NCBI RefSeq assembly: GCF_006345805.1
Contig: NC_043024.1
Location: forward strand, 8,990,001-9,054,000
Direction of reading: 5' to 3'
Source of the DNA: Octopus sinensis
Lineage: Eukaryota
Length of the DNA stretch: 64,000 nt
Shown: positions 1 through 45,207 of the stretch, in pieces
Numbering within the stretch: the stretch's first letter is position 1
How the letters are laid out: each line of letters starts with the position of its first letter
Program-made: the position numbers and the translations under genes
Notes under the pieces: generated by a model
What the model was told of the DNA's origin: nothing
What the model saw: only the letters and a program-made list of their open reading frames with translations
Database searches by the model: none

Positions 1-649
1 TACATATTATATATATATATACACATATATGTAACAAGCTTCTTTCAGTTTCCATCTACCAAATCCACTCACAAGGCTTTGGTCAGCCCAAGGCTATAGT
101 AGAAGACACTTGCCCAAGGTGCCACGCAGTGGGACTGAACCCAGAACCATGTGGTTCGTTAGCAAGCTACTTACCACACAGCCACTCCTATGCCTATATA
201 TACATATTATATATATATACATATATATATATATATATATATATATATATATATATATATATATATATATATATATATATATGTATGTACATGTGACTAA
301 GTGCATAACAGATTATGTGCAAAGCTTGCATACGCACACAGACTCCCCCATACACACACACAGAGTCTTATCTCAAAATATAATAACCGCAAGTGTAAAC
401 ATTTCCCACTGCCACCCTATAAATAGACCAAATTCAGCAGAATTCCGTTGCAGTTGCTTCAACACATTGACCGCGCAAGAATTTCCTTAGACAAAGACTT
501 CAGGCAGAAATTGAAATCCAATCTGGTAAATATTATATTTTTTCTTCCTTTAAAACTTTATTGAAATCTATAGTTTTCAATTTTACTTGATAATTTTTAA
601 GATTCCTCCTGTAATTTTAGTTACCATTTAAAATAATGAAATTATTTTA

Positions 650-1436
650 AACAGTGCTCAGGTGCACCACAACTTGTCAGAAAGTGCGTATAAAGCATAT
701 GCAGTAATGTACAAATGTCTGGGAAGCGAACAGTATATAAGTCAGATACATGCTTGTGTGTGTATGGAGGGGAGAAAATCAGGTGTAGTGTTGGCGAATC
801 TCAGAAAGCATGGAAGTTTTGAAAGATGCAGTGCTCCGACAACTAACAACTGATGCCAGCAGTTTTTTCCATGCTTCAGCAACTCTCAGCGTGAAAAAAT
901 GTTTCCGAAAGAAAATTTGATTATTTTAATAATAATAATAATAATAATAAAATTATTGTATACAGTGCTCAGGTGAACCACAACTTGTCAAAAGTGTGTA
1001 TAAAGCATATGCAGTAATGTACAAATGTCTGGGAAGTGAATAGTGTATGAGTCAGATACATGCTTGCATGTGTATGGAGGGGAGAAAATTAGGTGTAGTG
1101 TTGGCGAATCTCAGGAAGCATGGAAGTTTTGAAGGATGCAGTGCTCCGACAACTAACAACAGATGCTGGCAGTTTGTTCCATGCTTCAGCAACTCTTAGC
1201 GTGAAAAAATGTTTCCGAAAGTCATGGGAGCTGTGCTGTTTTCTGACTTTGTAAATATGCCCACGGGTGTTAGACAGGTGGAGTTTGAAAAGGTGCTCAG
1301 AGTTATTGTTTGTAAGATGGTTAATAATCTTATGGGTGTCTGCCAAGTCAGCTGCCAGACGTCGGAGTTTCAATGTATCATGCCCAGGGAAGTAAGGCGT
1401 TCAGAATATGGCAAATGCCTGATGGAGGGTATATTT
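650..1436 (-). mobile_element. CR1/L2-type LINE 3' fragment with its terminal ~300 bp duplicated in tandem
   Basis: ORF 1089-1373 (LAADLADTHKII...RGHIYKVRKQ...FRKHFFTLRVAEAWNKLP) is a typical CR1-like ORF2 C-terminus, with (ATT)n tails; a second terminal unit lies at ~650-950. Confidence 0.85.
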
Positions 1437-2334
1437 TAAAAAATATTATCAGATTTTATTATTTTTTTTAATCAACTTACAATTTTCTAACACATTTGCA
1501 TCATTAACCATTCATCAGAGCTATCTGTATATCAATTCCTCAAAGCTATTTGGTATGTGTATTTGTATATATACATTATTTTGTGAGTAACATTTTAGCA
1601 TTTCAAGCTGTTGAATTTAATCCGCCTTAAAAAATTTACTTTCTAAATCCCTCGGCACGAGCTGGAGTCTGCTTAGTTTTTGTATTTTTCTCATAATACC
1701 AAATGAAACGGTCTAAAGTTTTCTAAATTGACCAACAACGTTTTTAGTTTTTGACTGCAAGAGAGTATCTATTTAGTTGTTCTGTTCGCGTTTTGCATTT
1801 GAATGTCCATTTTCTTAATATACACCTACCTAACCTACCCCGCCGCCCGTGTGGCACGACACATGACCATTAATCTCTCGAAGGTCCAGTACAGTCGTGG
1901 CCTTGCCCTTTGTTGGCTGTACCATTACCATGAGTCGGAGCACTCTGCTCTTCACTTCTTCCTTCCACAGGATAAGGATACCCTCCTTGATCCATCTCTC
2001 TACTTCTCCTTCAAACCCACTCCTGGCATCTCCTTTCAAGGTATGATGACAAAAGCTTAGCCTGATTCTCAGCATTGAGGACTCCCCTTTCCAGTGCCAC
2101 TCAACAGTCTACCACTGATCGTTGAACACTGCCTGAAAATCTTTATCTCCAATAGTGTAAGCAGCCCTTTCTGCCCCATGGCGCTTTCCTTTCTCCTGTT
2201 GCAGACACATCGCGCATAATGCCCCTGTAACACCAAATGAAACCATGTCTCCACAAACACTGACACCTCCTAGGTGGTTGATTACGTCCATGCCCATCAC
2301 CACATCAGTTCATTCTACCACATGGTCGATCACA

Positions 2335-2690
2335 ATTACCCACAGCCTACACTCGCCTCCTTACGAGGGCTCAAAATCTCTCGTGGAAGTGTCACCCAAC
2401 CAAAGTACAAATATATGGGAAATTACCACCTGTGTCATCTCTTGTGAAAGATAGGAGAGTCCAGTTTGCTGGACATTGTTGTAGAGCTGAAAAAGAGGTA
2501 ATTTCTCCTCTTCTCCTCTTGAAGCCATCTGCTCGCGATACCAGAGGGCGCACACTCTCCTATCCTGATGTATCTCCAGGGATACAGGCATCCAGCAACA
2601 GGACCTCCGTAATGCTATGATGGACTGTGAAGTCTGGCGTAGCATAGTAAATTCCATTGTCTCAACCACGGTCGAACAATGATGATGATC
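2335..2690 (+). mobile_element. RTE-like LINE 3' fragment (mirror of 42860-43210)
   Basis: Same peptide remnants (VQFAGHCCRAE) and TGATGATGA tail. Confidence 0.8.
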
Positions 2691-2707
2691 GTATATATAT
2701 ATATATA

Positions 2708-41984: not shown

Positions 41985-43210
41985 GTTCGACCGTGGTTAA
42001 GACAATGGAATTTACTATGTTACGCCAGACTTCACGGTCCATCATAGCATTACGGAGGTCCTGTTGCTGGATGCCTGTATCCCTGGAGATTACATCAGGG
42101 TAGGAGAGTGTGCGCCCTCTGGTATCGCGAGCAGATGGCTTCCAGAGGAGAAGAGTAGAAATTACCTTGTTTTCAGCTCTACAACAATGTCCAGCAAACT
42201 GAACACTTCTACATTTCACAAGAGATGATACAGGTGGTAGTTTCCCATTTATTTGTACTTTGGTTGGATGACGCCTCCACGAGAGATTTAGTGCTCTCAT
42301 AAGGAGGCGAGTGTAAGTTCCATCCAACTGCCTCTCGAGCTTCTTTGATAACGTCCAGGTTTCTGAGCCATATAGTAGAATTGGTTCGACTGTGTATATA
42401 TATATATACGATCATCATCATTGTTCGCCTGTGGTCGAGACAATGGAATTTACTATGTTACGCCAGACTTCACGGTCCATCATAGCATTACGGAGGTCCT
42501 GTTGCTGGATGCCTGTATCCCTGGAGATTACATCGGGTAGGAGAGTGTGTGCCCTCTGGTTTCGTGAGTAGATTGCTTCCATAGGAGAAGAGTAGAAATT
42601 ACCTCTTTTTCAGCTCTACAACAATGTCCAGCAAACTGAACACTTCTACATTTCACAAGAGATGATACAGGTGGTAGTTTCCCATTTATTTGTACTTTGG
42701 TTGGATGACGCCTCCACGAGAGATTTTGAGCTCTCATAAGGAGGCGAGTGTAGGTTCCATCCAACCGCCTCTCGAGCTTCTTTGATAACGTCCAGGCTTC
42801 TGAACCATATAGTACAATTGGTTCGACTGTATATATATATATATATATATATATATATACAATCATCATCATTGTTCGCCCGTGGTTGAGACAATGGAAT
42901 TTACTATGCTACGCCAGACTTCACGGTCCATCATAGCATTACAGAGGTCCTGTTGCTGGATGCCTGTATCCCTGGAGATTACATAGGGGTAGGAGAGTGT
43001 GCCCTCTCTGGTATCGTGAGCAGATGGCTTCAAGAGGAAAAGTGTAGAAATTGCCTCGTTTTCAGCTCTACAACAATGTCCAGCAAACTGGACTCTCCTA
43101 CCTTTTACAAGAGATGATACAGGTGTAGTTTCCCATATATTTGCATTTTGGTTGGGTGACACTTCCACGAGAGATTTTGAGCTCTCGTAAGGAGGCGAGT
43201 GTAGGCTGCG
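41985..43210 (-). mobile_element. Three tandem 3' fragments of a second RTE-like LINE
   Basis: Each reads ...LYGSEAWTLSKKLERRLDGTYTRLLMRAQNLSW...MMDREVWRNIVNSIV..TVEQ* with a (TGA)n tail; copies at ~41985-42400, 42412-42830 and 42860-43210. Confidence 0.85.
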
Positions 43211-44117
43211 GGTAATTGTGATCGACCATGTGGTAGAATGAACTGATGTGATGATAGGCATGGACGTAATCAACCACCTAGGAGGTGTCAGTGTTTGTGG
43301 AGACATGGTTTCATTTGGTGTTACAGGGGCATTATGCGCGATGTGTCTGCAACAGGAGAAAGGAAAGCACCATGGGGCAGAAAGGGCTGCTTACACCATT
43401 GAAGATAAAGATTTTCAGGCAGTGTTCGACGATCAGTGGTAGACTGTTGAGTGGTGCTGGAAAGGGGAGCCCTCAATGCTGAGAAACAGGCTAAGCTTTT
43501 GTCATCATACCTTGGAAGGAGATGCCAGGAGTGTGTTTGAAGGAGAAGTAGAGAGATGGATCAAGGAGGATATCCTTATCCTGTGGAAGGAAGAAGTGAA
43601 GAGCAGATTGCTCCGACTGATGGTAATGGTACAGCCAACAAAGGGCAAGGCCAGGACTGTACTGGACCTTCGAGAGATCAATGGTCATGTGTCGTGCCAC
43701 ACGGGCGGCGGTGTAGGTTAGGTAGGTGTATATTAAGAAAATGGACATTCAAATGCAAAACGCGAGCAGAACAACTAAATAGATACTCTCTTGCAGTCAA
43801 AAACTAAAAACGTTGTTGGTTAATTTAGAAAACTTTAGACTGTTTCATTTGGTATTATGAGAAAAATACAAAAACTAAGCAGACTCCAGCTCGTGCCGAG
43901 AGATTTAGAAAGTAAATTTTATAAAGCGGTATAAATTCAACAGCTTGAAATGCTAAAATGTTACTCACAAAATAATGTATATATACAAATACACATACCA
44001 AATAGCTATGAGGAATTGATATACAGATAGCTCTGATGAATGCTTAATGATGTAAATGTGTTAGAAAATTGTAAGTTGATTAAAAAAAAATAAAACCTGA
44101 TAATATTTTTTAAAAAT

Positions 44118-44620
44118 ATACCCTCCATCAGGCATTTGTCATATTCTGAACGCCTTACTTCCCTGGGCATGATACATTGAAACTCCGACGTCTGGCAGCT
44201 GACTTGGCAGACACCCATAAAATTATCAACCATCTTACAAACAATAACTCTGAGCACCTTTTCAAACTCCACCCGTCTAACACCCGTGGACATATTTACA
44301 AAGTCAGAAAACAGCACAGCTCCCATGACTTTAGGAAACATTTTTTCACGCTAAGAGTTGCTGAAGCATGGAACAAACTGTCGGCATTAGTTGTTAGTTG
44401 TCGGAGCACTGCATCCTTCAAAACTTCCATGCTTCCTGAGATTCGCCAACACTACACCTGATTTTCTCCCCTCCATACACACACAAGCATGTATCTGACT
44501 TATACACTGTTCGCTTCCCAGACATTTGTACATTACTGCATATGCTTTATACGCACTTTCTGACAAGTTGTGGTGCACCCGAGCACTGTATACAATAATT
44601 TCATTATTTTAAATGGTAAC
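44118..44620 (+). mobile_element. CR1/L2-type LINE 3' fragment, mirror copy with a single terminal unit
   Basis: ORF 44177-44461 is nearly identical to 1089-1373. Confidence 0.85.
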
Positions 44621-45207
44621 TAAAATTACAGGAGGAATCTTAAAAATTATCAAGTAAAATTGAAAACTATAGATTTCAATAAAGTTTTAAAGGAAGAAAA
44701 AATATAATATTTACCAGATTGGATTTCAATTTCAGCCTGAAGTCTTTGTCTAAGGAAAGTCTTGCGCGGTCAATGTGTTGAAGCAACTGCAACGGAATTC
44801 TGCTGAATTTGGTCTATTTATAGGGTGGCAGTCAGAGATGTTTACACTTGCAGTTATTATATTTTGAGATAAGAATCTGTTGTGTGTATGGGGGAGTCTG
44901 TTTGCGTATGCAAGCTTTGCACTTAATCTGTTATGCACTTAGTCACATATACATACATACACATATATATAAATATATATATATATAAACATATTTATTT
45001 TAAATATATATATATATATATATATAGGCATAGGAGTGGCTGTGTGGTAAGTAGCTTGCTAACGAACCACATGGTTCCGGGTTCAGTCCCACTGCGTGGC
45101 ACCTTGGGCAAGTGTCTTCTACTATAGCCTTGGGCTGACCAAAGCCTTGTGAGTGGATTTGGTAGACGGAAACTGAAAGAAGCCTGTCGTATATATGTAT
45201 ATCTCTC

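Follow-up and report, generated by a model that had tools for sequence, protein, structure and literature searches.

The window analysed here is a stretch of 64,000 nucleotides from Octopus sinensis (C28:8,990,001-9,054,000), taken from an assembly of 2,719,151,902 bases in 13,516 sequences. In its first 45 kb it contains two convergent open reading frames (ORFs) of ~5.4 kb, 98% identical in protein, each of which lies on one arm of a long palindrome (Table 1). This agrees with an earlier interpretation made from the letters of the DNA, referred to below as the sequence-only reading, according to which each arm holds one copy of a large gene pointing at the apex. We interpret the locus as an inverted segmental duplication of an octopod-specific gene, which originated before O. 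sinensis and O. vulgaris separated and has experienced patchy gene conversion between its arms; to this reading we assign a probability of about 0.78.

Self-BLAST of the window resolves the inverted homology into one collinear anti-diagonal chain, from 17<>45202 to 24226<>26607, with block identities of 88-98%, and thus confirms that the first 45 kb are an inverted duplication. The left arm measures 24.2 kb (~16 kb minus its private insertions) and the right arm 18.6 kb. Both arm ends sit in dispersed repeats, and the homology does not extend to the edge of the window, as had been proposed, but starts at base 17, within such a repeat. A possible weak continuation (-436..220 with 53567..52909, 92.7%) is made of repeats and lies past a 7.7-kb right-private block with a long interspersed nuclear element (LINE); we rejected the idea that the arms reach past 17/45202, where homology is ambiguous and composed of repeats. 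Homology of unique sequence stops at 24226 on the left (25105 in a second copy, described below) and at 26607 on the right, and the interval between these ends comprises a TATC microsatellite, a core of 229 nucleotides (nt) and a dispersed element of ~500 bp. The innermost inverted microsatellite pair (I7, 25667-25731 and 25961-26025, 86%) puts the symmetry centre at ~25846, near the previously suggested apex at ~25,838. The description of the palindrome as having "almost no spacer" holds only if the microsatellite remnants are counted as arm, which leaves the 229-nt core, and fails otherwise. The arms combine a host gene with several unrelated repeats, and the locus shows what characterizes an inverted segmental duplication, namely copies of at least 1 kb and at least 90% identity, inverted, on the same chromosome, and not formed by a single transposable element.

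The palindrome has a counterpart in O. vulgaris, whose assembly was made from another individual with Oxford Nanopore, 10x and Omni-C data (PMC10700109). Two O. vulgaris proteins are encoded on OX597840.1, at 8,615,201-8,620,220 (+) and 8,643,959-8,649,258 (-), i.e. convergently and 23.7 kb apart; the sequence-only reading had pointed to related octopus assemblies as a place to look for the structure, and in this one the convergent pair is present. For the comparison we used two O. vulgaris loci, L018, which is the orthologue of the left arm, and L019, which is the orthologue of the right arm including its outer flank. L018 holds the "left-private" block of (TA)n and LINE sequence (the LINE part is 0.79% diverged), L019 holds the "right-private" 430-bp repeat, and the outer boundary of the palindrome is identical in the two species. 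In the inner block 16004-16767 the orthologues are 0.26-0.66% apart and the paralogues 5.7-6.1%; the site patterns in these 765 bp are 41 orthologous, 0 concerted (a concerted site being one at which the two arms of one species are alike) and 0 discordant. Unconverted paralogues have diverged by ~6%, as against 0.3-0.9% between orthologues. The duplication predates the O. sinensis/O. vulgaris split and is roughly 6-12 times older than it; with the split put at 2.5 million years (PMC10700109), a rough age for the duplication would be some tens of millions of years.

The independent O. vulgaris pair, taken together with a paralogue divergence far above that of the orthologues, indicates that the structure is real and not a haplotype mis-join. 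An assembly artefact, in which two haplotypes were joined head to head at the scaffold gap or a chimeric fold-back read was built into the start of the second contig, would fit the 100-N join lying only ~1 kb from the symmetry centre, and also the character of the O. sinensis assembly (GCA_006345805.1), which was built from PacBio and Hi-C data (PMC10700109), the former being continuous long reads (CLR), and includes many unplaced haplotig-like scaffolds. We nevertheless give this explanation almost no credence. The same convergent pair with orthologous arms occurs in the independent assembly, which upholds the earlier view of an old and genuine structure, and the arm-specific insertions and the 41 arm-specific substitutions in 765 bp are common to both species. 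Moreover, the ~6% unconverted divergence greatly exceeds both the 0-0.6% that separates haplotig-like scaffold pairs of the gene family and the 1.22% heterozygosity reported for O. vulgaris (PMC10700109), which contradicts the head-to-head joining of haplotypes that the sequence-only reading had named as its refuting case.

The gap itself, which is the sole run of N from 50 kb before the window to 20 kb after it, proved to be a junction of two contigs with overlapping ends. The last 783 bases of contig A (23976-24758) and the first 762 bases of contig B are 94.4% identical in direct orientation; their unique parts are ~99-100% identical, and the differences are 1-bp insertions or deletions (indels) and changes of microsatellite length, as would be expected of thinly covered contig ends. 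At 9-10 sites that are diagnostic of left versus right arm, both contig ends have the left-arm state. Since the ends overlap and carry left-arm variants, nothing is missing at the gap and ~0.88 kb is represented twice, the left arm having been drawn too long by this amount in the sequence-only reading. Because contig B starts with the left-arm state, it runs from the left arm through the centre to the right arm, and because the gap lies inside the microsatellite, no reading frame is affected. A missed-adapter fold-back read at the start of contig B is excluded, since it would show right-arm variants on both sides, while the first 250 bp of this contig have left-arm variants. Furthermore, contigs A and B run for >75 kb and >49 kb, respectively, without further mutual homology.

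To describe the history of the arms, we aligned the 9.5-kb gene block of all four of them, i.e. the left and right arms of O. sinensis (sinL, sinR) and of O. vulgaris (vulL, vulR). The informative sites fall into 67 orthologous, 54 concerted and 3 discordant ones. The differences between sinL and sinR are clustered, with a longest difference-free run of 93 variable sites, a length matched in none of 10,000 permutations (p<1e-4). Three exact matches between sinL and sinR, of 1849, 1569 and 1496 bp (4.9 kb in total), stand apart from all others, the next-longest anywhere in the arms being 247 bp, and they alternate with stretches in which the arms differ and each resembles its orthologue (tracts 1-3 and the unconverted tracts in Table 1). 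In the stretches that are identical in O. sinensis, the O. vulgaris arms are 1.9-4.7% apart (4.7% over tract 1), and constraint therefore cannot account for the identity in O. sinensis. The claim of arm-to-arm conversion made in the sequence-only reading is thereby substantiated, and we infer from the mosaic that non-allelic gene conversion has acted recently. Its direction can be suggested for two of the tracts: in tract 2 the O. sinensis pair differs by 0.83% from vulL and by 1.66% from vulR, in tract 3 by 1.42% and 2.98%, respectively, and this closeness to vulL points to copying from left to right. Runs of private differences in each left copy at 13042-14736 may represent short independent right-to-left events in both species. 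The O. vulgaris assembly, too, shows shorter clustered patches. The tracts gave no sign of a GC bias (70 sites at which G or C was kept, 62 at which A or T was kept).

It could be argued that the duplication is real, whereas the identical tracts were produced by read correction or polishing that homogenized the paralogues. The tracts come from one consensus sequence, correction of CLR data can blur paralogues that are 98% identical, and the lack of GC bias would fit such an origin. Yet the tracts are sharply bounded and alternate, on a kilobase scale below the read length, with tracts that keep every paralogue-specific site shared with O. vulgaris; tracts 2 and 3 are mostly of one arm's type, where site-by-site voting should yield a random mix; and clustered patches occur also in O. 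vulgaris, which was sequenced with another technology. On balance we consider homogenization during assembly unlikely as the source of the tracts.

Several observations weigh against an inverted segmental duplication with patchy conversion, at least in its simple form. The evidence as a whole is assembly consensus, and the identical tracts rest on a single PacBio CLR and Hi-C consensus. The O. vulgaris comparison covers the arms on either side of a central 3.7 kb (OX597840.1:8,630,221-8,633,958). Tract 1 is composite: here both O. vulgaris copies lie a full 3.6-4.3% away from the O. sinensis pair, so that neither points to a donor. Orthologue divergence is 2.2-5.2% in the outer arm and right flank (244-1896 and 41800-49197), as opposed to 0.3-0.9% in the inner parts, and in the outer flanks the four copies are equidistant, diverging in a star-like manner by 3-5%, a pattern left unexplained by the simple model. 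Finally, the inner arms differ between the species by an inverted 2.36-kb segment and by a foldback-type repeat in O. vulgaris.

As to these inner arms, the inverted segment lies in the right arm (window 27333-29690, L019 17208-19562), shows 0.94% substitutions, and is either a real species-specific event or a local mis-assembly in one of the species. A dispersed repeat of foldback type, whose inverted ends measure ~1.1 kb, occurs in the inner arms of O. vulgaris (L018 23421-25020, L019 21717-24855) and is absent from the O. sinensis palindrome. One whole element of this type, with arms 96.6% alike, makes up the unplaced O. sinensis scaffold C7047:1-4428 (L045). We considered this 4.4-kb scaffold as a candidate for a missing centre and rejected it: it merely represents one copy of this dispersed repeat, shares 88-94% identity with the inner arms of O. 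vulgaris and has no match in the window.

The duplicated gene is one of a family of which O. sinensis has at least 25 full-length copies. Most of these lie on C30, where they form a cluster at ~4.3-14.1 Mb; in O. vulgaris the cluster is found on one 29.2-Mb chromosome. Several unplaced scaffolds (C1165, C13092, C11292, C11793) duplicate segments of C30 with a divergence of 0-0.6% and probably represent haplotigs that were retained. Family members are ~21-24% apart, and relatives were found in O. vulgaris, O. bimaculoides and, at 37-38% amino acid identity, Argonauta hians. At an identity of at least 99%, the gene block occurs in the 2.72-Gb assembly as these two copies only, the next best match being at 78%, and no other locus has it at >80%. 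A third family member lies upstream, at -15420..-10861 (C28:8974581-8979140, minus strand, an ORF of 1519 amino acids (aa), ~79% nucleotide identity to the arm genes), so that the palindrome is embedded in a small gene cluster. A tree of the family places the four arm copies in an isolated clade on a long branch, within which they group by orthology. We rejected recurrent palindrome formation in the family, since none of the other adjacent convergent pairs, which lie on C30 and C1165, consists of sisters, so that the arm pair is the only recent inverted duplicate among the sampled copies.

Searches of Pfam (strict and relaxed) and of PDB sequences with the ORF gave nothing usable. An AlphaFold model covering residues 230-1400 (predicted local distance difference test, pLDDT, 65; predicted template modelling score, pTM, 0.36) consists of beta structure throughout, its strands following the rhythm of tandem propellers, and Foldseek matched it to LRP2, DDB1 and IFT-A with template modelling scores (TM) of at most 0.19, which speaks for a fold class and not for a family. 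The gene is best described as a member of an intronless, octopod-specific family predicted to encode an orphan multi-beta-propeller protein of ~1,800 aa. Its copies in the arms differ in integrity. In sinL a 1-bp deletion in a G run at ~12892 replaces the C-terminus conserved in the family; in vulR the loss of 1 bp from a T run causes an internal frameshift (at ~9488 when converted to window positions); vulL has an extra base, again with an internal frameshift (~11218), as well as in-frame deletions. Among the four arm copies only sinR keeps the conserved C-terminus. These frameshifts in three of the four copies could be assembly errors. Between the four copies, the ratio of nonsynonymous to synonymous substitution rates (dN/dS) ranges from 0.57 to 0.76.

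Two directly repeated copies of a high-copy dispersed element of ~503 bp flank the ORF, in either arm and in either species. This arrangement, the copy number of the ORF family (at least 25 full-length members) and the presence of foldback-type repeats in the O. sinensis genome might suggest a foldback-type mobile element with very long terminal inverted repeats (TIRs), in which the large ORF is cargo or a transposase. Such an origin is hardly credible, however. The arms occur at a single locus, at orthologous positions in two species, and no dispersed copies of the whole inverted structure are seen, as would characterize foldback or long-TIR transposons. The predicted all-beta propeller protein has no signature of a nuclease, transposase or reverse transcriptase (RT), and the 21-24% divergence within the family, with Argonauta at 37-38% aa, fits an old gene family. 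The flanking repeats themselves were rejected as LTR-like (long terminal repeat) or TIR-like ends: they are directly oriented copies of a dispersed element for which there are thousands of candidates, and the neighbouring paralogue lacks them. They mimic LTRs and are independent insertions older than the duplication.

The chain confirms all five arm-private insertions listed in the sequence-only reading, and the copy numbers of tandem repeats do differ between the arms, as it had stated. A 310-bp repeat of the outer arms is present in 1.9 copies in the O. sinensis left arm (632-1221) and in ~9 copies in the O. vulgaris left arm (L018 1959-4734); a related 302-bp tandem repeat of 8.9 copies occupies 60707-63407, at the right end of the window. 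Roughly 3 kb outside the left arm, at -4867..-3106 (C28:8985133-8986894, L015/L014), the centre and the right inner end (25265-27004) recur in a third copy, which is inverted, 90-92% identical and includes the ~500-bp dispersed element. Beyond the right arm, fragments of non-LTR retrotransposons with endonuclease, RT and PHD-finger ORFs are found on the minus strand at 48902-50468 and 56031-56999; each of them adjoins an ATGT microsatellite, and the copies are 87% alike (47314-48822 vs 54521-56049).

Table 1. Features of the palindrome and its surroundings. Positions are those of the window; paired positions denote the left arm and the matching stretch of the right arm; a dot stands for no strand.
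Feature	Position	Strand	Description
Left arm	17-24226	+	on contig A; TATC microsatellite tail 24227-24758; orthologous to L018
Right arm	26607-45202	-	orthologous to L019
Scaffold gap, 100 N	24759-24858	.	contig junction with overlapping ends
Start of contig B	24859-25620	+	redundant duplicate of the inner left-arm end and TATC microsatellite
Central core	25732-25960	.	229 nt between innermost pairing remnants
Chain block	17-911 / 45202-44329		94.3%
Chain block	939-2707 / 44611-42844		95.5%
Chain block	4275-5265 / 42408-41417		94.2%
Chain block	4902-14025 / 41045-31914		97.9% over 9152 columns
Chain block	13897-14736 / 31806-30966		97.7%
Chain block	14703-15185 / 30965-30476		93.9%
Chain block	15185-15405 / 30029-29794		88%
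Chain block	16004-16767 / 28194-27430		93.2%
Chain block	23362-24226 / 27442-26607		90.1%
Left gene copy (LOC118768319-like)	7681-13059	+	intronless ORF of 1792 aa
Right gene copy	32939-38254	-	ORF of 1771 aa with family-consensus C-terminus
Conversion tract 1 (putative)	6757-8252 / 39178-37683	+	exact, 1496 bp; promoter-proximal region, 503-bp element, first 572 bp of the coding sequence
Unconverted tract	8253-9155	+	arms 2.3% apart; each arm 0.4-1.0% from its O. vulgaris orthologue
Conversion tract 2 (putative)	9156-10724 / 36779-35211	+	exact, 1569 bp
Unconverted tract	10725-11045	+	arms 7.8% apart, with a 15-bp indel common to both right copies; orthologues 0-0.65%
Conversion tract 3 (putative)	11046-12894 / 34904-33056	+	exact, 1849 bp; substitution-free up to 13041
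~503-bp element, left pair	7132-7635, 13396-13890		direct repeats flanking the ORF
~503-bp element, right pair	38300-38803, 32049-32549		direct repeats flanking the ORF
Left-private insertion, 1.57 kb	2708-4273	+	begins with a copy of the ~500-bp dispersed element; absent from the O. vulgaris left arm
Left-private insertion, 6.6 kb	16768-23361	+	(TA)n arrays around a LINE fragment, RT ORF 19074-19550; also in the O. vulgaris left arm
Right-private element, ~500 bp	26117-26606	.	high-copy, dispersed, with 101-bp internal repeats
Right-private dispersed repeat, ~430 bp	28205-28636	.	also in the O. vulgaris right arm
Right-private insertion, ~446 bp	30030-30475	.	dispersed repeat
Flank outside the right arm	45203-52908	.	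LINE with endonuclease and PHD ORFs 48902-50468; at least 45004-49197 present in O. vulgaris

The history of the locus can then be reconstructed as follows. One member of the octopod-specific family was duplicated in inverted orientation well before the species split; the arms then diverged by ~6% at unconstrained sites, each gaining its own insertions of LINEs, sequences resembling short interspersed nuclear elements (SINE-like) and microsatellites. Non-allelic conversion would have acted on the coding region and the sequence immediately before it, the part of the arms that remained most alike. The three identical tracts of the O. sinensis lineage (4.9 kb) would stem from it, mostly through copying of left-type sequence onto the right arm, as would the shorter patches in both species. 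We read the locus as an ordinary inverted segmental duplication with conversion, a known process, and it reveals no new mechanism. Its value lies elsewhere: a suspicious palindrome beside a scaffold gap in a draft octopus genome turns out to be genuine, and it provides a case of non-allelic gene conversion in a cephalopod that can be dated and followed in two species. The case is useful for annotating large lineage-specific gene families of octopuses and calls for caution in analyses of orthology and dN/dS, as converted tracts make paralogues appear younger. It also draws attention to an uncharacterised octopod-only family of putative tandem beta-propeller proteins of ~1,800 aa, clustered on one small chromosome.

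The sequence-only reading had likened the locus to the gene-bearing palindromes of mammalian sex chromosomes, which are defined as having arms >10 kb with >99% identity that is maintained by conversion. The octopus palindrome resembles them (human Y P1-P8, and those of the primate and mouse X) in its inverted arms of >10 kb with a short spacer, in the presence of one gene copy per arm, in its conservation across species and in conversion. Its arms exceed the minimum of ~8-10 kb set for such systems, and the assemblies suggest that conversion is ongoing. Unlike the mammalian palindromes, it has arms that are 88-98% identical and ~6% apart where unconverted, and are therefore not "kept alike" in the mammalian sense of >99%; its conversion is patchy, covering 4.9 kb of arms of ~19-24 kb with no GC bias detected, and the gene in its arms is under weak constraint, three of the four copies having frameshifts.

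An amplicon-like palindrome maintained by selection, in which conversion is favoured because it keeps a germline-expressed gene intact in a region that is sex-linked or recombines little, would agree with the arm length, the convergent gene pair, the persistence of the structure in two species, and the concentration of conversion on the gene and the sequence upstream of it, with free divergence of the flanks. Such maintenance seems improbable to us. Besides the arm identity, far under 99%, the dN/dS values and the frameshifts in the copies as assembled argue against it and do not establish the gene-preserving role suggested earlier, and the other adjacent convergent pairs of the family are not sister copies. 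Conversion requires high identity, so that its confinement to the best-conserved stretch is expected without selection. Nor is sex linkage, which the sequence-only reading had proposed to check, supported: the putative O. sinensis Z is "chr20" (PMC10925132), the window lies on C28 (20.3 Mb), and C20 measures 33.0 Mb, so that the palindrome appears to be off the putative Z if the scaffold numbers match the chromosome numbering of that paper, as we assumed. An autosomal variant of the idea, in which selection directs conversion to the promoter and coding sequence of a fast-evolving, octopod-only multi-propeller gene, is in our view doubtful. The palindrome would then be an invertebrate, non-sex-linked counterpart of the gene-preserving palindromes of mammals, and the gene family, with dozens of copies mostly on one small chromosome, would have a germline or self/non-self role that favours maintenance of this kind.

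With haplotig mis-joins the locus shares an N gap near the symmetry centre. It differs from them in the direct overlap of the contig ends, in a centre that lies inside one contig, in an arm divergence 10 times that of haplotigs and in its presence in a second species; mis-joins and fold-backs would be marked by arms differing only at the allelic level, by a junction made by the scaffolder and by absence from independent assemblies, a combination that the locus does not show. A full-text literature search combining palindrome, gene conversion and cephalopod returned no relevant paper, and this is the first such structure that we have found described for a cephalopod. The closest parallels are autosomal inverted segmental duplications with interlocus conversion, known from catalogues for human and other genomes, with which the octopus palindrome shares inverted copies of >1 kb and >90% identity, mosaic tracts, a lineage-specific cluster of fast-evolving genes, breakpoints rich in transposable elements and a species-specific inversion inside the structure. 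From these it shows no essential difference, and the novelty lies in its cephalopod host.

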